Of a stretch of DNA of 64,000 bases, positions 3,596-39,660 are shown piece by piece (position 1 is the first letter of the stretch; each line of letters starts with the position of its first letter). Source of the DNA: Mobula birostris. Lineage: Eukaryota. The stretch lies in the NCBI RefSeq assembly GCF_030028105.1, contig NC_092376.1, positions 87,866,733 to 87,930,732 of the forward strand. Direction: 5' to 3'. The notes under the pieces are model-generated. The model made no database searches and had not been told where the DNA came from. It worked only from the letters and a program-made list of their open reading frames with translations. The translations under genes and the position numbers were made by a program.

Positions 3596-4125
3596 CAAAA
3601 GTACAAAGTGCAAAGTAAATTTATCATCAAAGTACATACTGTATAGTGTATGCCATCATTTACCACCCTGAAATTCATTTTATTTGGTGGGAATTCACAG
3701 TAAACAGAAAGAAACACGATAGAATCAATGAAAAACTGCACACAACAACGAGAGACAAACAATGTGCAAAAGAGGACAATACATATTGATAACATGAGCT
3801 TTAGAGTCCATAGGTTGTGGAATCAGTTCAGTGATTGCAGTACGTGAAGTTATCCACTCTGGCTTGAGAGTCTGGTGTCTGAGGGGTAATAACTGTTCCT
3901 GAACCTGGTGATGAGACCTCAGTCTCCTGTACTGCATTCCTGATGGCAGCAGAGAGAAGAGAGCATGGCCTGGATGGTGGGGTCCTTGATGATGGATGCT
4001 GCTTTCATGTGACAGCGCTCACAGGTGGGGAGAGCTTTACCTGTAATGGAGTGGCCTGTATCCATTACGCTTACTTGGCTTTTCCATTCAAGGACATTGG
4101 TGTTTCCATACCAGGCCATGTGCAA
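3596..4125 (-). mobile_element. Rex1/Babar-type LINE 3' fragment
   Basis: Frameshifted C-terminus KAASIIKDPT-(HPGHAL)-SLLPSGMQYRRLRS; tail gaatttcagggtggta...tttgatgataaatttactttg. Confidence 0.7.
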
Positions 4126-15980: not shown

Positions 15981-18093
15981 TCCATTGGTGAGAACTGGTG
16001 AGTAATTGATACTTGCAGACTCAAAAATATCTTACATCACTTTGCTGATGATTGAAAATAAATGGATGAGGGAAGCAGTTGTGAAATCCATGGCTGCCTT
16101 CCTTTGGGACATACTGGTTATTTGGGGCATGAACTCCAATGAGTTCAATAGTTGAACAGTTGAATACAGTAAATGGTTGTTGCATTGCAAACAGCCAGCT
16201 GCACACTCTTAGTGACTGAAAGCCAAACCCTCAGGCTATCTGGTCAAAAGGCAATCTGTGTTATTGAATGTTCATTCACAAATGGTGGCTATCTCTTCAG
16301 TCTTGTTTAAAATTTTCAATATGTTTTCTTAGGTGCTCAAACTAACTTAGTAAATATTACAAAAAATAACCACGTCTTCAAACCGGCAGCTGGTCTCTCT
16401 CATTCTTTGAATGTAATTGGAGTGCTAATATTAAGTTTAAGTTGTGCTGGCTTGTGCAGCCTGAAAACTGAGAGGTTTGCACAGGACTGCACACCACCTT
16501 TGGACACCACAAGGGATAGACCAGAGCAGCACATGGGCAGATATTGTCAAATGAGACCATGCCAGGAAATAGAACATTCAGGGAAGTCCTGGAATAAACT
16601 CTGGTGTCGGGTCAGAATATTTACCACCTGGAGTGACAATGGAGCAGATTGGATTTACTTGTTTTCAGTGGATAACACATGCCTGCTAAGCAGCATAGAA
16701 TGTAGAATAGTACAGCACAGCACAGGCCCTTCAGCCCACAATGTTGTGCCGACCCTCAAACCCTGCCTCCCATGTAAGCCCCCACCTTAGATTCCTCCAT
16801 ATACCTGCCTAGTAGTCTCTTAAACTTCACTAGTGTATCTGCCTCCACCACCTACTCAGGCAGTGCATTCCACACACCAACCACTCTCTGAGTAAAAAAC
16901 CTTCCTCTGATATCCCCCTTGAACTTCCCACCCCTTACCTTAAAGCCATGTCCTCTTGTATTGAGCAGTGGTGCCCTGGGGAAGAGGCACTGGCTATCCA
17001 CTCTATCTATTCCTCTTATTATCTTATACACCTGTATCATGTCTCCTCTCATCCTCCTTCTCTCCAAAGAGTAAAGCCCTAGCTCCCTTAATCTCTGATC
17101 ATAATCCATACTCTCTAAACCAGGCAGCATCCTGGTAAATCTCCTCTATACCCTTTCCAATGTTTCCACATCCTTCCTATAGTGAGGTGACCAGAACTGG
17201 ACACAGCACTCCAAGTGTGGCTGAACCAGAGTTTTATAGAGCTGTATCATTACATCACGACTCTTAAACTCTATCCTTCAACTTATGAAAGCTAACACCC
17301 CATAAGCTTTCTTAACTACCCTATCCACCTGTGAGGCAACTTTCAGGGATCTATGGACATGTACCCCCAGATCCCTCTGCTCCTCCACACTACAAAGTAT
17401 CCTGCCATTTACTTTGTACTCTGCCTTTGTGTTTGTCCTTCCAAAGTGTACCACCTCACTCTTCTCCGGGTTGAACTCCATCTGCCACTTCTCAGCCCAC
17501 TTCTGCATCCTATCAATGTCTCTCTGCAATCTTTGACAATCCTCTACACTATCTACAACACCACCAACCTTTGTGTCATCTGCAAACTTGCCAACCCACC
17601 CTTCTACCCCCACATCCAGGTCGTTAATAAAAATCACGAAAATTAGAGGTCCCAGAACAGACCCTTGTGGGACACCACTAGTCACAATCCTCCAATCTGA
17701 ATGTACTCCCTCCACCACAACCCTCTACCCTCTGCAGGTAAGCTAATTCTGAATCCACCTGGCCAAACTTCCCTGGATCCCATGCCTTCTGACTTTCTGA
17801 ATAAGCCTGCCATGTGGAACCTTGTCAAATGCCTTACTGAAATCCATAAAGATCACATTCACTGCACTACCCTCATCTATATGCCTGGTCACCTCCTCAA
17901 AGAACTCTATCAGGCTTGTTAGACACGATCTGCCCTTCACAAAGCCATGCTGACTGTCCCTGATCAGACCATGATTCCCGAAATGCCCAGAGATCCTATC
18001 TCGAAGAATCTTTTCCAACAGGTTTCCCACCACAGATGTAAGGCTCACTGGTCTATAATTACCCAGACTATCCCTACTACCTTTTTTGAACAA

Positions 18094-21000
18094 AGTCATA
18101 GTCATAGTCATAGTCATACTTTATTAATCCCGGGGGAAATTGGTTTTCGTTACAGTTGCTCCATAAACAATAAATAGTAATAGAACCATAAATAGTTAAA
18201 TAGTAATATGTAAATTATGAAATAAGTCCAGGACCAGCCTATTGGCTCAGGGTGTCTGACCCTCCAAGGGAGGAGTTGTAAAGTTTGATGGCCACAGGCA
18301 GGAATGACTTCCTATGACGCTCTGTGCTGCATCTTGGAGGAATGAGTCTCTGGCTGAATGTACTCCTGTGCCCATCCAGTACATTATGTAGTGGATGGGA
18401 GACATTGACCAAGATGGCATGCAACTTAGATAGCATCCTCTTTTCAGACACCACCGTGAGAGAGTCCAGTTCCATCCCCACAACATCACTGGCCTTACGA
18501 ATGAGTTTGTTGATTCTGTTGGTGTCTGCCACCCTCAGCCTGCTGCCCCAGCACACAACAGCAAACATGATAGCACTGGCCACCACAGACTCATAGATCA
18601 TCCTCAGCATCGTCCGGCAGATGTTAAAGGACCTCAGTCTCCTCAGGAAATAGAGACGGTTCTGGCCCTTCTTGTAGACAGCCTCAGTGTTCTTTGACCA
18701 GTCCAGTTTATTGTCAATTCGTATCCCCAGGTATTTGTAATCCTCCACCATGTCAACACTGACCCCCTGGATGGAAACAGGGGTCACCAGTACCTTAGCT
18801 CTCCTCAGGTCTACCACCAGCTCCTTAGTCTTTTTCACATTAAGCTGCAGATAATTCTGCTCACACCATGTGACAAAGTTTCCTACCGTAGCCCTGTACT
18901 CAGCCTCATCTCCCTTGCTGATGCATCCAACTATGGCAGAGTCATCCGTAAACTTCTGAAGATGACAAGACTCTGTGCAATAGTTGAAGTCCGAGGTGTA
19001 AATGGTGAAGAGAAAGGGAGACAAGACAGTGCCCTGTGGAGCCCCAGTGCTGCTGATCACTCTGTCGGACACACAGTGTTGCAAGCACACGTACTGTGGT
19101 CTGCCAGTCAGGTAATCAAGAATCCATGATACCAGGGAAGCATCCACCTGCATCGCTGTCAGCTTCTCTCCCAGCAGAGCAGGGCGGATGGTGTTGAACG
19201 CACTGGAGAAGTCAAAAAACATGACCCTCACAGTGCTCGCTGGCTTGTCCAGGTGGGCGTAGACACGGTTCAGCAGGTAGATGATGGCATCCTCAACTCC
19301 TAGTCGGGGCTGGTAGGCGAACTGGAGGGGATCTAAGTGTGGCCTGACCATAGGCCGGAGCAGCTCCAGAACAAGTCTCTCCAGGGTCTTCATGATGTGG
19401 GAGGTCAATGCCACCGGTCTGTAGTCATTGAGGCCGCTGGGGCGCGGCGTCTTCGGCACAGGGACGAGGCAGTACGTCGTCCACAGTACAGGAACCCTCC
19501 GGAGCCTCAGGCTCAGGTTGAATTCATGGCGAAGTACTCCACATAGCTGAGGGGCACAGGCTTTGAGCACCCTGGTACTGACACCATCTGGTCCTGCAGC
19601 CTTGCTTGAGTTGAGACGTTTCAGCTGTCTTCTCACCTGTTCAGCTGTGAAGCCCACCGTGGTGGTTTTGTGTGGGGGAGTGGTATAGTCATGAGAGCAG
19701 GGTGGGGGACTGTGAGGAGGGGTAGGAGGGAGAGTGGAATATGTGTTGATTGGGGGCCGACAATAGATGGCTCATGTGGGGGATGGGCAGGGGCCACACT
19801 GTCAAATCTGTTAAAGAACAGGTTAAGTTCATTGGCCCTGTCCACACTGCCTTCCTCTCCATTGCTAGTTTGCCAGAACCCAGTGATGTTCCTCATCCCC
19901 CTCCAGACCTCTCTCATGTTGTTCTGCTGGGGTTTCCACTCAAGCTTCCTCCTGTACCTGTCTTTAGCCTCCCTGATCCTGGCTTTCAGGTCACTCTGTA
20001 TTGCCCTCAGCTCCTCCCTATTTCCATCTCTAAACGCCCTCTTTTTAGCGTTCAGGATGTCCTTAATGTCCTTTGTCATCCATGGCTTGTTATTTGAATA
20101 ACAAAGGACAGTTCTTGTCGGAACATTGCAATCCACACAGAAGTTGATGTAATCAGTGATGCATTCTGTGAGCCCATCAATATCCTCTCCATGTGGCTCA
20201 CAGAGTGCCTGCCAGTCTGTCACCTCAAAACAACCCTGCAGCGCCCCATAAGCCTCCTCCGACCATTTCCTCACTGTCCTCGAGGTTGCAGGTTTACTCT
20301 TCACCAGAGGCATGTAGCAGGGTTTTAGGTGCACCAGGTTGTGATCTGACCTTCCCAATGGGGGAGGGGAGAGGAGCTGTATGCATCCTTAACGTTAGCG
20401 TACATCAAATCCAGAGTCCTCTCCCCTCTGGTTGTACAGCTCACATACTGCGTGAAGTTGGGCAGTGTTCTAGCCATGGTAACCTGGTTGAAGTCACCCG
20501 AGATGGTAATGAGGGCACTCGGGTGCTGGGTTTGTAATCTGGCTATGATGGTGTAGATGATGTTACACGCCGACGTCGGGTTGGCAGAAGGAGGGATGAA
20601 CACAACAACCACAATTGCATGTGAGATTTCCCTTGGCAAATAATATGGCCGGAGTCCAACAGCAAAAAGTTCAATATCCAGGCTACAGACCCGTTCCTTA
20701 ATCGTAATATGCCCAGAATTGCACCATTTGTTATTTATCAGAACCGTCAGCCCCCCACCTTTATGCTTACCGCTCTCTGTGCAATTCTGGTCAGCTCAAA
20801 CTGTCTGGAAGCCCTCTATGGAAACACTTTGATTGGGCATGTCCTCGTGCAGCCACGTTTTAGTGAAGCACATGACACTGCTCTCCCAAAATGTTCTCTG
20901 ACTCCTGACAAGCGCAGTCAGTTTGTCCATTTTATTCCCCAGCGATCTCATATTTCCCGTGATAAGAGAGGGGAGACACGGCTTATAACTTCTCTTCTCC

Positions 21001-33280: not shown

Positions 33281-34449
33281 TGAATGTATACAGTATCAAA
33301 CTGACATTTTTGAGTGACATACCAAATCCACAAAGGGAATATACATACATTGCACACTTGTTTAAATCTATATTGAATAGTTTCAATAAATGTTTCATTA
33401 GTCTTTAAAATGCATCCTTTAATAAGCCAACAGTTTTTGAGTTTTCTTTCTGGTATCTCTTATTGTCTCTTTAATCAATAAGTAGCCCTAAGTAAAACTA
33501 TTGCAGTATTCTCACAGTTCTGTGAATTGCCGTTTTACAACATCTTGCAGTTAGAATGAGCAATGGCATGCAGCTGGCATTTGATGTAATTGATGCCATT
33601 GATGTATGAGAGGTGGGGCAGGGTGGATTTGTGTGGTAATTCTGGAAGGTTTTTGAATGCCGACAGCCATCCAAACAATTACTAATATTTTTAATGAACA
33701 AGATTACCTGGATAATACAGGGCTTATACTTGCAGATGCACTGCTAAAGCTCAAAAAAATCTGCTGATTTGCTCTGCCAACCAGCAGGTTCAATCCAGAT
33801 GTATTATTCACTATTCATTTTTTCCACATGTTTGGCTTGTCATGAAGATGGTTGACAAAGTTTTCGGTGCCATTGGTAGGCTAATTATGGCTTGTGTGGG
33901 ATTAATGATATTCTACCTCAGGAGACCTCCTTCTATGTTAGTTTTAAAGTATTTCCTTTGTTCCTGCTTATCCTGCTGCTAAATGAATAAGGTTCTTCTG
34001 TATTTAGTAGTGTTCTATTCCATTTGGAAACTGTACACTGGAACATTTCCAATCATAAAATCAATGTCATCCTAGCTCTGCGGTGTTACGGTTACCTTCA
34101 TTTCAATCTCCAATGCAAAGCATCATGCTAATACTTCTACATATTATTGATGGAGAATTTCTGTTGTGAGAATTGTCGATTTTGATTGAAATAATTAATA
34201 GCTCAGAAATTGTTTTGCATAGCACAATGGTCTTGAGTTCTATACAAAGGATTTTTATCATAAACTCATGATGAACCAGTACTTACTGCATATTAAAACA
34301 GGCTACCAAATTTGTCTGATTGTCTGTGCATGCTTATAGATTTACATAGATTTTCACAGCATAGGAACGCGCACTATGGCCCAACTTGTCATTGTAGTCC
34401 AGGGCAGCAACCTGACCTAGTCCCATTTGACCCACTGTGTACATACATC

Positions 34450-35959
34450 TATTGATGCTTCTGGACACATCTTCAGTGATGTTCCTGGAATCATTGGGTG
34501 TTTCGGGTCTTTCAACATCATACAACCTCCTCCAGGTGACCCAGCCGGGGCTGATCAGACCCCAGCTTGTGTCCAGATGGCTAGCTACTTATGACTCCAT
34601 GGCTCCCCTCTTTTGAGCCACAGCCATCTTGAGGCCCTCTCTGCCGCATCGGTGGTACTGCGGATGGCTCTCCTCTTCCTCTCTCCCTTGATGCCCAAAA
34701 TGCTGAAGGCTCTAACTAGAGAATGGCCTCCGAATCCCCTACAACCACCCTCCACTTGGAGACACCTTGCTCTCCATCCAGCCTGCTGACAGTTGCTGAC
34801 CAGTCCTGCATACTTGGAGAGCTTCCTTTCAAAGGCCTCTTCCAAGCTATCTTCCCATGGGACTGTCAGCTCCAGCAGCACCACTTGCTTAGTTGACTCA
34901 GACACTAGGACAATGTCTGGTCGCAGGGTGCTAGCTGCGATATGGTTGGGGAACTTCAGCTGCCCTTCGAGGTCCACCAACAGCTGCCAGTCCCTTGCAG
35001 AGGTCAGAATGCCTGCAGATGTTCTTTTGGCAGGTATTGGCTGCTCCCCAGCTCTGACAAAGGTAATGGTCTGCTTGGAGGGTCGGGACCGCTTCGCCCA
35101 CTCAACTCCTGCACTGACGGCTTCAGTGATGGTCTTCAGGACCTGATCATGCCCCCACCTATACCGTCCCTCACCAAGTGTCCTTGTGCAGCCACTGAGG
35201 ATGTGCTCCAGGGTTCCTCGCTTGGAGCACAGTGGGCACGCAGATGACTCTGCCTTGCCCCATGTGTGCAGGTTTGATGGGCTTGGAAGCACATCGTACA
35301 CTGCCTGGATGAGAAATTGGATGCGGTGTGGTTCGGCTTTCTAAAGATCAGCCCAGGTCACTTTCCTCTCAACCGCATTCTCCCATCTTGTCCAAGCTCC
35401 CTGTTGCCATTCCCACCGCCTTGCAGGCTCTCATCTCCTCCACTACTGCTCTCACCTCCTCCTGAACTAGACGACGCCTTTCCTTCCCTCTGGTGTCCAT
35501 TTGGGGAGTTGGAAGGGATCCTAGCCCAGCTCGGCCTCGTGTGACCACTCCCACCAGCCTCCTGTGACGCAGCCTCGCCTCTGCCTCCTGAACAGCTTCC
35601 TCTGCCCTCCACTTCCTGCCAGTACTTACTTGGATCCCTGGTCCAGCCACCTTCGGGTCACTTGAGTCCCTATACTGTCGCACTTTGCTGGCTCTTGTTA
35701 CTTTGAATTCTTCCTCCAAGGATTTGAAGGGCAGTTGCAGTTTGTTTTGGTGTCCATAGAGTGTGATGCTGCTCAGGCTCTTTGGCAGCCCCAGCCATCT
35801 CCTGAGGTGGTTGCTAACCCTCCTCTCTAAGATTTCGACTGTCGAAATCGGAACTGCATAGACGAGGAGGGGCCACAGGATCCTGGGAAGAATACCATGC
35901 TGATACACCCAGGCTTTAAACTTCCCAGGTAGGCCAGACTTGTCCACAGATTTCACCAA
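34450..35959 (-). mobile_element. 5'-truncated HERO (R2-group, RLE) non-LTR retrotransposon
   Basis: VDKSGLPGKFKAWVYQHGILPRILWPL; CCHC motif CPLC...HILSGC; HDQVL; RLE motif RPDIV...LLELTVPWE...ERKLSKY; stop at 34585-34587; tentative 7-bp TSD atacatc at 34443-34449 and 35960-35966. Confidence 0.88.
34460..34577 (-). ncRNA. Structured 3'UTR RNA containing a rearranged hammerhead-like core
   Basis: Six complementary helices, with CUGAAGA, GAAA and GUA each positioned at the expected helix ends (details in findings). Confidence 0.65.
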
Positions 35960-36429
35960 ATACATCAAAACATTTCCTATTCATGTACCTGTCCAAAAGT
36001 CTTTTAAACATTGTAATGGTACCTACCTCTACTACTTTGTTCCATATACCTACCAATCTGGGTGTGAAAATCTTTTTCCTCATATCCCCTCCAAATCAGT
36101 CCCCTCTCACCTTACAACTGTTTCCTTTGGTTTTAGACTCTCCTGTTTGGGAAAAAAGGATTATGCCTCTTATAATTTTATAACTATCTATAAGGCTACC
36201 ATTCAGTCTCCTTTGTTCTGGGGAAAACAGTCCTAGTCTCTTCTTAGAAGTCAAGTCTTCTGACCCAAGCAAAATTCCTATGAATCTTTTCCGCACCTTC
36301 TCTAGCTTAATTGCATACTTCTAATGCTCCATGCAGCTTACCTGTAACGTGATATTCCAACTCCTATACTCTGCTACTGAAGGCAAGCATACTGTATACT
36401 CGCTTCACTTGTCTGCCTACTTAGAGAAT

Positions 36430-36950
36430 GGATAAAGGTTGTGTTGTCATTAGAGAGAGTCCAGATGATGTTCATGATGATGATTCTGGGAATGAAGGAG
36501 TTAACATATGAGGAGTATTTGGCAGCTTTAGGCCTCTACTCATTGGAATTTAGAAGAATGCGGGGGGATCTCATTAAAACCTACTGAATGTTGAAAGGAC
36601 TAGATGGGGTGGATGTGGAGATGGTGTTTCCTACGGTGGGGGTATCCAGAAGCAGAGGGCACAGCCACAAAATTGAGGGGTGACCTTCTAGAACAGAAGT
36701 AAGGAGGAATTTTTTTAGCCAAAGAGTGGTGCATCTGTGGAATGCTCTGCTACAATCTGCCGTGGAGGCCAAGCCCACGGGTATTTTTAAGGCACAAGTT
36801 GATCGTTTCCTGATTGGTCAGGGCATCAGAGGATATGTTAAGAAAGCAGGAGTATGGGGTTGAGTGGGATCAGGGATCAGCCATGATGGCATGGGAGAGC
36901 AGACTTGATGGGCTGAATGGTTTAATTCAGCTCCAATGTCTAATGGTCTA
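36430..36950 (+). mobile_element. CR1 3' end
   Basis: ggcctctactcattggaatttagaagaatgcggggggatctcat (LGLYSLEFRRMRGDL); tail gatgggctgaatggtttaattcagctcc. Confidence 0.85.
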
Positions 36951-36959
36951 CTTGTTCCA

Positions 36960-37490
36960 CGATTTTCAGGGAACTATATACTTGTAACTGTTTAAGGTGT
37001 CATGCTTCAATAAAATCCCTAGGGTCCTGCAGTTCACTGTGTATGTCATGGCATGGGCTAGCTTCTTAAAATGCATAACTCTGCACTTGAAAGAGTTAAA
37101 TTCTATTAGACATTCCCTTACCCTTTTTCCTAAATGATCTAGATTTTGTAGACAACCTTCTATACTGTCCACTATACAACCAATTTTGGTCTCATCTACA
37201 AAGTCACGTCACTTACATCGTCTTACACCTGATTAATATAGAAATGAACAATGAGAAACACAGACTCGATCACTGTAGCACGTCATTGGTTACACATCTC
37301 CAACATGAAAAATGTTCCTCCAACACCACTTACTACCTCCTACCACCAAGCAAATTTGCTATCTCACTCCTTGATAACCCCTCTGGGCCAGCCTTCCATG
37401 TGGAACCTTTCTAAAGTCCATGTAAACATTATCCACTGTCCCCCCCACCCCCCATCAATCTGCTTCATCACCTCCCTAAAAAAAAATCAA
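36960..37490 (-). mobile_element. Degenerate CR1 RT fragment
   Basis: ccatgtggaacctttctaaagtccatgtaaac (VYMDF-KVPHG on the - strand); IEFNSFKCRVMHF. Confidence 0.7.
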
Positions 37491-37962
37491 CATGCCCCAA
37501 TACGTGCGGTTAAAATTGACATCACTGATGGATTATAATCAATTATGAACAGTTTCATCTCCTCGTGCCACTGGGATGATGCCCCCTTTGCCGGATATAA
37601 AGAGGCTCTGTCTGGCCTGGTCCTTGGATGTGAAGTCTGACCCACCGTTAGACTGGATTTAATATTTCTACTGAGCCCTCGATCCTTCCGGGCATATACT
37701 TTGGCCATTTCCTTCATATGTTGTTGAAGTATTCGTCCTGTGACTTGGAATCCATGAAAAAGGATAGTGCTTTTTTTTGGAATCCATGACTTACTTAAGT
37801 TTCCTTTCTATCTCCACAACCACGTGGAACTGCTGACTGTTCATACTCTCTCACACCCCCATTCATTGTGAGTTTAATGTCTGCTTGGTCTGTCATATAT
37901 TGTTAGGTGTTAGTCCCTTGGCGTTATGTAAACAAAGGTCGTTCTCTCTGTGGCCTGACTGG

Positions 37963-38215
37963 TAACACAAGAGATCCTGCAGATGCTGGAAATCACAAGC
38001 AACATGCACAAAACCTTGGAGGAACTCAGCAAGTCTAGCAGCTTCTATGGAAAGGAATTAACGGTCGACATTTTGGACTGGAAAAGAAGGGGGCAGGAGC
38101 CAGAAGAAGAAGGTGGGGGAGGGGAAGGAGGGCAAGCAGTCAGGTGATAGCTGAAATCAAGTGAGGAGAAAGTGGATGTGTGAGGGAGGGGCATGAAGTA
38201 AGAAGCTGGGATGTT
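37963..38215 (-). mobile_element. Penelope-type 3' repeat
   Basis: aacacaagagatcctgcagatgctggaaatc...ggaggaactcagcaagtctagcagc...ggtcgacattttgg, then a purine-rich tract; hammerhead stem II region deleted. Confidence 0.65.
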
Positions 38216-39044
38216 CCTGCTAGTAAAACCATGTTGTTAGGCCATTCTTTAGTTCATTCTTTGTGAAACCTTGCTATGCATGTACTGACAGATGTCATTG
38301 TGTGCATAACAGTGACTGCACTTCCAAAAACAGTTCATTGGTTATAAAGCGTTTGGAATTTCCTAAAATAGTTACAAGATGTTTTATAAATCCAAGCCTT
38401 TTCATGGTTGTTAACATAATTATCTTTAAACCACAAACTCACAAGGCAATGAAAACATTTGTAATGTTGCTCCAAGGAAAATTACTTACTTTGCACACTT
38501 TATAGATTGACTGTACAATCATAAAAGATTGGCTGTCGAAGCTTGTTTCGAGTCTGCCAGCCAGAAACAAAACTAAACTTTTATTTTGTTTTTGGCCAAT
38601 ATTATTTTGCAAACTAATTTTGCAAGAGAATCTGTTCTATGAAATATAAGTAGGTGACAGAAATGGCAGTGATTGATAATAGTTTGACAGGATTCAACAA
38701 CAGAGTGAACTAAATTGTTCATTGTCATTACCTAAACTTTGCCAATTGTGGTCTATTAAATTTAATTGTTTCTAATGAATATTTGTGTTCACTAAAGAGA
38801 AAAGAAATGCTCAGCAGAGAATATTGTGTCCTTTGTGTGTTTACTGTATGGAAATGATGAGCTAATTGTGTGATACTTTCTGACTTTTGAATGGTCCAGT
38901 ATTACAACAGTTCAGGGTGACCAAGAAATTTCTGGCAGCTTCAAACATGGGTGATTAATAATTACTGAATTGTTTATGAGTTTGTAATTAACTTTAAGAG
39001 AAATAATTTGAGCAAGGATAACGTGCTTTTTGGAGACAATTTTG

Positions 39045-39660
39045 GAGTGCGGAGCTTAGTCAAGATGGTGCTGAATGGTGACTGTTGCTTGCATCTTTGG
39101 AAACAGCTCTATTTCCATCTTCAATATCTCTATTTTTCCCTTTCAGGGTTCTTTTGGAGACCCTGACCTGGAGTTACATGCTGAATTTGGTTCTTTGAGG
39201 GAATGGGACTTGATCTCAGGGCCTCACGACTGGCCGTTATCTGACATGCCAAGGGCGCGGCCTAAGAATTTGACACGCCTTTGGAGGCCTAGGATCTCAG
39301 GGCTCTGGAGATGTGCAGATTAAATGTTAGTGTTCCAGACTTGTGTGTTGTGGGAGCTGGAGGATCATTGACTGTGTGCCCAGAGACCTGAGATCTTCAC
39401 TCGCAGAGCTCGGAAAAAGCGACGCAACGAACTTCTAACATCCGTTACCATTTGTTGGTGGGGGGAGGGTGGATCATAGTTTGCTGCTGCTTATGCACGG
39501 GAGGGAGAGGAGCTGGGGCGGACTTAGTGTTTCTAACATTTAACTGTCATTCATTCTTAGGAGCACTCTGTTTTTGTGGATGCTTGTGAAGAAAAAAAAT
39601 TTCAGGATGTATATTGTATACATACTTCTGACATTAAATGTACTTTCGAAACCTTTGAAA
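39045..39660 (+). mobile_element. Apparently complete non-autonomous Rex1-type retroposon
   Basis: 5' caagatgg start motif, CpG-containing non-coding body, tail aatttcaggatgtatattgtatacat...gacattaaatgtactttcga. Confidence 0.65.

Follow-up and report, generated by a model that had tools for sequence, protein, structure and literature searches.

Does the RNA that follows the stop codon of an animal retrotransposon fold into a hammerhead ribozyme whose strands are joined in an unfamiliar order, and does that ribozyme cut? The question is raised by a LINE (long interspersed nuclear element) copy within a 64,000-nt stretch of Mobula birostris DNA (NC_092376.1, positions 87,866,733 to 87,930,732; hereafter the window), where an initial annotation, made from the letters alone, had proposed a complete hammerhead core in the 3' untranslated region (UTR) of an element that it called HERO. 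Coordinates below refer to the window, and the motif is read on minus-strand RNA. It is a 118-nt stretch, 34577-34460 (-), in a family of about 120 nt, and lies just downstream of an open reading frame (ORF) that ends with UAG at 34587-34585 (-). We consider it likely that this module, located at the 3' end of a clade of LINEs and, in arrays, between the units, folds as a newly wired hammerhead, which most probably cuts after position 17.

Six helices make up the motif, namely P1, P2, P3 (as stem II), P4 and the hammerhead stems I and III. Strings printed from the window place every strand claimed in the initial annotation at its minus-strand coordinates and, together with the ORF list, agree with a stop codon just upstream. 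Plain folding of the window copy (z = -2.57) yields, of the six helices, just P1, P2 and some of P4; P1 stands in both the minimum free energy and the centroid structure, and P4 comes in with the latter. No Rfam 15 family matches the motif at E ≤ 10 in a scan of 33500-39500, as expected for a non-circular order. Both outcomes would be expected of a pseudoknotted, permuted RNA, and a single copy is therefore unable to decide the matter. Neither self-BLAST nor the covariance model described below, which has one match in the window, finds a second copy of the motif there.

Relatives were collected by a protein-guided scan of metagenome contigs, which yielded 80 loci encoding proteins 40-84% identical to that of the window (individual loci are cited below by L numbers). 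UTR BLAST matches many of the 80 at 70-94% identity, and nhmmer places the motif in 55 of them. A covariance model built from 30 seeds and confined to the nested helices (P1, P2, P4 and III) gives 70 matches at a cut-off of E ≤ 0.01, comprising the window, 65 of the 80 loci and four second copies, all on the ORF strand. Ten of the 15 loci without a model match have no stop codon or at most 101 nt beyond it. The other five have at least 150 nt after the stop; among them, L047 gains the motif once filters are off, and L054, L059, L074 and L079 show none even then. As a control, a 14-base core pattern was sought in viral contigs, where it has at least 119 chance matches; none of the 80 listed pattern-bearing viral contigs fits the model at E ≤ 0.01, and a protein search of viral contigs gave no relative.

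The counts that follow come from an alignment of 68 distinct motif sequences (rows) with 43 base pairs in the six helices. Standard pairs are formed in 92.3% of its cells, against 36-41% in slid controls. Double-sided changes occur in 41 of the 43 pairs, and the score for covariation reaches 0.702 (controls, 0.07-0.10). For the 30 seeds by themselves, pairing is likewise 92.3% (slid controls, 35-43%) and 38 of the 43 pairs change on both sides. Covariation is seen in all six helices, including stems I, II (P3) and III; two of these, stem I and P3, were absent from the search model. The bases of the hammerhead core are nearly invariant. CUGAAGA at 34470-34476 (-) supplies C3, U4, G5, A6, N7, G8 and A9, and among 68 rows the hammerhead base is found in all at U4, G5 and A9, in 67 at A6, and in 66 each at C3 and G8. 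GAAA at 34501-34504 (-) supplies G12, A13, A14 and A15.1. A13 and A14 are kept in 67/67 rows, A15.1 in 66/67 and G12 in 63/67, the other four rows (L007, L035, L036 and L037) having A at a CpG, beside interrupted ORFs. U16.1 is U in 66/67 rows, G10.1 is G in 64/67 and C11.1 is C in 58/67. Of 61 complete rows, 53 have the expected base at all 12 core positions checked. N7 varies freely (U 42, C 13, A 9 and G 4 among 68 rows), and position 17 is U in 28 rows, C in 23, A in 16 and G in none of 67; such a free N7 with a non-G position 17 reads as a specific hammerhead signature. Helix covariation and core conservation were what the initial annotation had staked its proposal on, and the alignment bears both out. 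Because this is a comparison across loci, joined to covariation and a negative viral control, and not a judgement on a single copy, the motif is far more than chance.

Chance assembly of short motifs within one structured UTR had been a natural suspicion, given that the motifs are indeed short and that the helices were picked by eye in a single sequence. With 70 matches, covariation in every helix, only 36-41% pairing in the slid controls and 0/80 listed pattern-bearing control contigs matching the model at E ≤ 0.01, it is now extremely improbable. We regard it as refuted by the covariation, the number of matches, the conservation of the core and the viral-contig control.

Traced from 5' to 3', the window copy opens with the 5' strand of P1 (34568-34577), which forms ten perfect pairs with the 3' strand at 34460-34469 and clamps both ends of the motif; all ten pairs change on both sides in the alignment, with 93.6-94.7% paired. 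P2 is a hairpin (34543-34567) of 8 bp, in which 34567-34560 pairs with 34550-34543 around a loop at 34559-34551; its eight pairs all change on both sides (92.0% paired). The 5' strand of P3 (34538-34542) pairs with 34505-34509 (95.6% paired; 4/5 pairs change on both sides), and that of P4 (34530-34536) with 34484-34490, tying together the far ends of stems I and II (85.8% paired; 7/7). The 5' strand of stem III (34522-34527), ending in G16.2 and U16.1, pairs with 34496-34501 (96.4% paired; 5/6). The single mismatch in stem III that the initial annotation reported is present in the window copy, as a U.C opposition, and is private to it: other copies (L002, L061 and contigs from public runs) have G at 34525 on the RNA strand and an intact stem, and stem III is also intact in L001, L011 and L008. 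Position 17, here A, is at 34521, and the predicted scissile bond lies between 34521 and 34520. Stem I begins at once (5' strand 34514-34520, 3' strand 34477-34483; 90.7% paired; 7/7), and a four-base linker (34510-34513) joins its far end to the far end of stem II. The 3' strands of P3, stem III, P4 and stem I then follow in that order, with GAAA between the first two, and CUGAAGA leads into the 3' strand of P1, which begins directly after A9.

How are these strands wired? The order is substrate strand, GAAA strand, CUGA strand, pseudoknotted and with a complete core at the correct helix ends; this description, given by the initial annotation for one copy, holds over the 68 distinct sequences. 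P3 is stem II, with G at 34542 (G10.1) and C at 34505 (C11.1) as its first pair and with its 5' strand upstream of the substrate strand. Between A9 and G10.1, P1 and P2 are inserted: what follows A9 pairs with the start of the motif, and the continuous A9-to-G10.1 chain of a standard hammerhead three-way junction is absent. The initial annotation had stem II replaced by a P1/P2/P3 junction; the junction is there, although P3 is itself stem II and only P1 and P2 are inserted. Its alternative stem II, a switch in which the bases after CUGANGA pair with those before GAAA, finds no footing in the alignment, where pairing is 44.3% in register and 53.5% when shifted by one, the background of the slid controls. 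P1, P2 and P3 are contiguous, alignment columns 11/12, 57/58 and 147/148 being adjacent without linker bases; the pairs flanking the junction are formed in 54/61, 62/65 and 58/63 rows, and the P1 pair adjoining A9 (columns 11/148) is standard in 54/61. Without spacers between these helices, P1, P2, stem II and the core should therefore meet in a perfect four-way junction, in which stem II could keep its stacking on the A9.G12 layer, with P1 stacked on P2.

The linker from stem I to stem II measures 4 nt in 50/64 rows and 3 nt in 10/64, a single base joins P3 to P4 in 64/64, and at most one unpaired base separates P4 from stem I in most rows. Between P4 and stem III the strands resemble a kink-turn, the consensus of which consists of a canonical helix, a 3-nt bulge, tandem G.A/A.G pairs and a non-canonical helix. 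In the window copy the segment 34491-34495 (-) has a bulge (34495-34493) followed by GA (34492-34491), and the unbulged strand has GA at 34528-34529 (-), directly 5' of stem III. The bulge is of 3 nt in 54/64 rows, GA occurs on both strands in 49/64, and nothing intervenes between the unbulged GA and stem III in 64/64. By position, the unbulged strand has G in 54/67 rows and A in 57/67, the bulged strand G in 62/66 and A in 62/66. Matched to the consensus as a pattern of sequence, stem III would be the canonical helix and P4 (34530-34536 / 34490-34484) the non-canonical arm with a non-standard third pair; the innermost P4 pair, 34530/34490, is mostly non-standard, as expected of the kink-turn 3b.3n position. 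At the level of this pattern, P4 and stem III appear to form a kink-turn-like unit, which would bend P4 back so that it runs alongside stems III and II and points to the ends of stems I and II. No report of a hammerhead whose stem III is capped by a kink-turn came up in a literature search. We also considered whether the P2 loop pairs with the UGA of the kink-turn-like segment and, from inspection by eye, set this aside: the loop becomes UGGCCA while the segment stays UGA.

Natural non-circularly permuted hammerheads, which the initial annotation mentioned without a source, have been published by Eckert, Friedrich, Weinberg and Weinberg (2023; PMC10085705) as types SGC, CSG and GCS. In the main text of that paper, to which the comparison with the LINE motif here refers, type-SGC hammerheads (the HRIMA-1 motif and variants) cleave in vitro, three blocks are defined that were assumed impossible to interrupt, and the linker between stems I and II of type SGC is typically 3 nt. 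The LINE motif shares with type SGC the S-G-C block order, the short linker between stems I and II, an extra tying helix (here P4), the pseudoknot and the complete core. It differs in that its C block is broken at A9/G10.1, where P1 and P2 span the gap, the 5' strand of stem II standing ahead of the substrate block, and in that the 5' and 3' ends of type SGC are joined into the kink-turn-like bend. An uninterrupted C block, the defining property of type SGC, is thus lacking. The hosts differ as well: the type-SGC contigs were found through hairpin ribozymes and attributed to circular-RNA virus-like agents, whereas the LINE motif sits in an autonomous animal LINE. In formal terms the LINE motif can be derived from type SGC by circular permutation with a different opening point, clamped by P1 and P2; it is a relative rather than a member.

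In the 65 loci the motif follows or overlaps the stop codon, at a median distance from the stop of -1 nt. The stop starts inside the motif in 30/65 loci (for example L061, L005 and L007), at most 10 nt upstream of it in 12 further loci and more than 10 nt upstream in 22/65. The P2 loop contains the start of the stop codon in 13 loci, 11 of which use the UGA of UGAUCA for it. With the stop inside or near the motif, a terminating ribosome would open the P1/P2 clamp, and termination and folding should therefore compete. UGAUCA, at 34557-34552 (-) in the window, is one of six palindromes found in P2 loops, the others being UGGCCA, UGUACA, UCAUGA, GACGUC and AGUACU, all of them connected by symmetric double substitutions. 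Of 61 rows, 46 have a Watson-Crick palindrome of six bases in this loop, where shuffling gives 11.3 on average and 20 at most. This preference suggests loop-loop pairing between two copies of the motif. The dimerisation site of HIV-1 (DIS) is a palindromic kissing loop, and the P2 loop is like it in sequence as a six-base self-complementary apical loop. Unlike the DIS, it doubles in 11 loci as the source of the ORF stop.

Beyond the motif, a new unit of the same family often begins. In 15 loci (L029, L065, L069, L080 and 11 more) the N-terminus of a new same-family ORF lies 43-445 nt beyond the motif, and in four (L027, L003, L008 and L018) a second motif lies about 3.6-3.7 kb upstream; in L027 the two occupy 1-106 and 3714-3828. 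The paired motifs of these four loci differ at 1-21 positions and are therefore real, separate copies. The elements thus often stand in head-to-tail tandem arrays in DNA, with the motif between units. In more than half of 19 tandem units, judged by eye, a conserved N-terminal peptide (of the YPQ-LPRGG-ER type) and the N-terminal zinc finger precede the first in-frame ATG (for example L027 190-570, L011 3310-3702 and L050 1845-2384), so translation may start elsewhere than at that ATG. The translation start of R2 is likewise said to be unclear.

Downstream of P1, the 3' tail (34436-34459, -) consists of a short hairpin (34457-34454 / 34449-34446) and an unpaired end. The window copy can be matched to L001 as far as 34436, which lies 24 nt beyond P1 and marks the 3' boundary of the copy. 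The cut would accordingly fall 85 nt from that boundary and not about 70 nt from the RNA end, as the initial annotation had it. The stem of the tail hairpin has at least three different sequences among 10 close relatives, judged by eye. After the hairpin come UAU and a short tail, and 34436 coincides with the common 3' boundary of the family. The tails of L067 (about 1100-1134) and L013 (about 3709-3743) run into AACCC-like short repeats; targeting of microsatellites has been reported for some HERO families (PMC4640811), and these two tails may be in keeping with it.

We propose the following model. The transcript would enter and leave the ribozyme through P1, and the predicted cut would fall after position 17, that is, after 34521. 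The upstream product would carry the 5' strands of P1, P3, P4 and stem III plus P2, and the downstream product the partner strands and the entire stem I, so that P1, P3, P4 and stem III, 28 bp in the window copy, would hold the two together. Because the products would stay clamped, the cut should be reversible, or the gap could be ligated or crossed by a template-jumping reverse transcriptase; through religation or bridging, integrated copies would keep the whole motif. In read-through or tandem transcripts, two successive cuts would release a unit-length RNA, the ends of which could rebuild the same complex. The fold and the tail hairpin probably also mark the start of reverse transcription. 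A broader scenario, in which the clade uses an undescribed hammerhead topology, its clamped units are religated to circles, rolling-circle-like copying gives rise to the arrays, translation starts independently of AUG and P2 loops pair with one another, is one that we entertain tentatively and find rather doubtful. Circles and rolling-circle copying as the source of arrays, the pairing of neighbours through P2 and the link to AUG-independent translation are its speculative elements.

Public sequencing data were also compared with the motif. All 22 runs are kept as contigs, which were aligned to 34380-35000. Contigs from four runs cover the motif, and those from three diverge at 34433-34436, which corresponds to the copy boundary. 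Other copies among them have C at position 17 or G at 34525, the latter closing the stem III mismatch. At the predicted site the contigs, one of them from an RNA library, are continuous; RNA ends do not show up in contigs, so the finding speaks neither for nor against cutting. A change in contig depth near the cut site, present in one run and not in others, was not used, as a depth given per contig cannot rank its parts. One metagenome contig (L021, motif at 1223-1279) ends exactly at position 17, a single case to which we give no weight.

Several observations weigh against a cutting hammerhead. Cleavage is predicted from the sequence, and the available contigs, which cannot show RNA ends, span the site uncut. 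Integrated copies keep the part downstream of the predicted cut, and the chain break at A9/G10.1 lies in a block that the authors of PMC10085705 assumed uninterruptible. The silence of Rfam, though expected, lends no support, and perfect cores are not significantly commoner beside open ORFs (18/19 versus 28/34, p = 0.40). Some of these points are what one would see if the RNA took the shape of a hammerhead without cutting and served solely as the handle of the reverse transcriptase in target-primed reverse transcription, as with the 3' UTR of R2, cleavage being absent or suppressed. The motif ends 24 nt short of the copy boundary and is the chief conserved RNA structure in the 3' region of the element; it is kept whole in integrated copies and uncut in contigs, its chain is broken at A9/G10.1, and R2 proteins bind a pseudoknotted 3' UTR RNA (PMC12222951). 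However, conservation reaches beyond the helices to the catalytic bases, with N7 free and position 17 never G, an RNA in the active hammerhead fold would be expected to cut, and type-SGC relatives of the same S-G-C order do cleave (PMC10085705). Binding is moreover compatible with cutting, so this explanation overlaps the one we favour; as an account that dispenses with cleavage, it seems to us unlikely.

The stop codons invite a different view, in which the module controls translation by termination-reinitiation or cap-independent initiation and its hammerhead likeness is secondary. The stop inside the motif in 30/65 loci and within 10 nt upstream in 12 more, the frequent lack of an early AUG in the ORF of the next unit (more than half of 19 units by eye, for example L027, L011 and L050) and reports of ribozymes that promote translation initiation (PMC13725137) would all suit it. 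We nevertheless judge it quite improbable: the conserved catalytic bases are left unexplained, the stop is more than 10 nt upstream in 22/65 loci, and such control could coexist with cutting by the ribozyme instead of competing with it as an explanation. A kink-turn protein-binding module of the box C/D or a similar kind, with UGAUGA as C box, the CUGA of the P2 loop as D box and the hammerhead as coincidence, could draw on the C-box-like UGAUGA within CUGAUGA, the frequency of CUGA in the P2 loop and the presence of a kink-turn-like pattern. That pattern, however, is located elsewhere, at the junction of stem III and P4; the order of the boxes is reversed relative to C/D RNA; and GAA, U16.1, H17 and stems I-III are unexplained. 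The freely varying middle base of CUGANGA and the absence of any snoRNA family match at E ≤ 10 led us to reject this very improbable reading. A newly wired hammerhead that probably cuts after position 17 remains the explanation that we prefer.

If the motif does cut, it would not be the only ribozyme in a retroelement. Cervera and de la Pena described hammerheads in Penelope-like elements and retrozymes (PMC4209133, PMC7229834 and PMC4918200), some of which act as dimers. The LINE motif has in common with them a ribozyme in the repeated end or junction of a tandem retroelement and the idea that multimers are trimmed. Their hammerheads are canonical type I/III or minimal and reside in Penelope-like or non-autonomous hosts, whereas ours is permuted and belongs to a LINE with a restriction-like endonuclease; and circular RNAs have been demonstrated for retrozymes, the LINE motif being known here from its sequence. 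The 5' self-cleaving ribozyme of R2, similar to that of hepatitis delta virus and already invoked in the initial annotation, is documented in PMC3774820. Both it and the LINE motif occur within a LINE carrying a restriction-like endonuclease, upstream of an ORF without a dependable AUG, and both trim a longer transcript, in our case by prediction. They differ in class and position, the R2 ribozyme forming the 5' end of a single ribosomal DNA (rDNA) insertion and the LINE motif the 3' end of an element or the boundary between tandem units. No paper joining hammerheads with HERO or other LINEs with restriction-like endonucleases was found in a search that did not extend to subscription journals or the supplements of PMC10085705.

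If it cuts, the motif would be the first hammerhead assigned to a LINE that is autonomous and encodes a restriction-like endonuclease, and it would add a further natural strand order to the three circular and the published non-circular types. It would also mean that the chain can open between A9 and G10.1; since searches assume that it cannot, such ribozymes would have escaped every descriptor-based survey. The kink-turn-like bend would offer a concrete answer to the puzzle posed by type SGC, in which the end of stem III must somehow be brought to those of stems I and II. The model provides a testable route to defined RNA ends outside rDNA, to the formation of tandem arrays and to the expression of an ORF lacking an early AUG. 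For annotation of this LINE clade, the covariance model is a sharp marker, and the clamped, product-retaining design may find use in RNA engineering.

What element, finally, carries the motif? The ORF at 34585-35301 (-) is the C-terminal part of a 5'-truncated, frame-broken LINE copy and encodes a CCHC zinc knuckle followed by a PD-(D/E)xK-like (restriction-like endonuclease) region, with a weak zf-RVT match. It has 752 protein homologues, the best named one, 90% identical, being from a ray and others from teleosts, a scallop and a lancelet. The full-length relatives have a single ORF of 1123-1180 residues with an N-terminal zinc finger, RVT_1, zf-RVT and a C-terminal PD-(D/E)xK-like region, and on this domain content the clade appears to consist of single-ORF LINEs carrying a restriction-like endonuclease. 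When these relatives were used as tblastn queries, they covered the window at 35956-34597, in two frames and over about the last 450 residues only, which makes the window copy a dead, 5'-truncated one. HERO is the label given in the initial annotation, with which the spread over fishes, lancelet and scallop and the ORF architecture are compatible. Directly upstream of the truncated copy and on the same strand, at 35916-36300 (-), two short ORFs appear to resemble the C-terminal end of a different LINE family. A region at 17284-19678 (-) shows weak reverse-transcriptase similarity (21-26% identity) to the full-length relatives and represents another, unrelated LINE.

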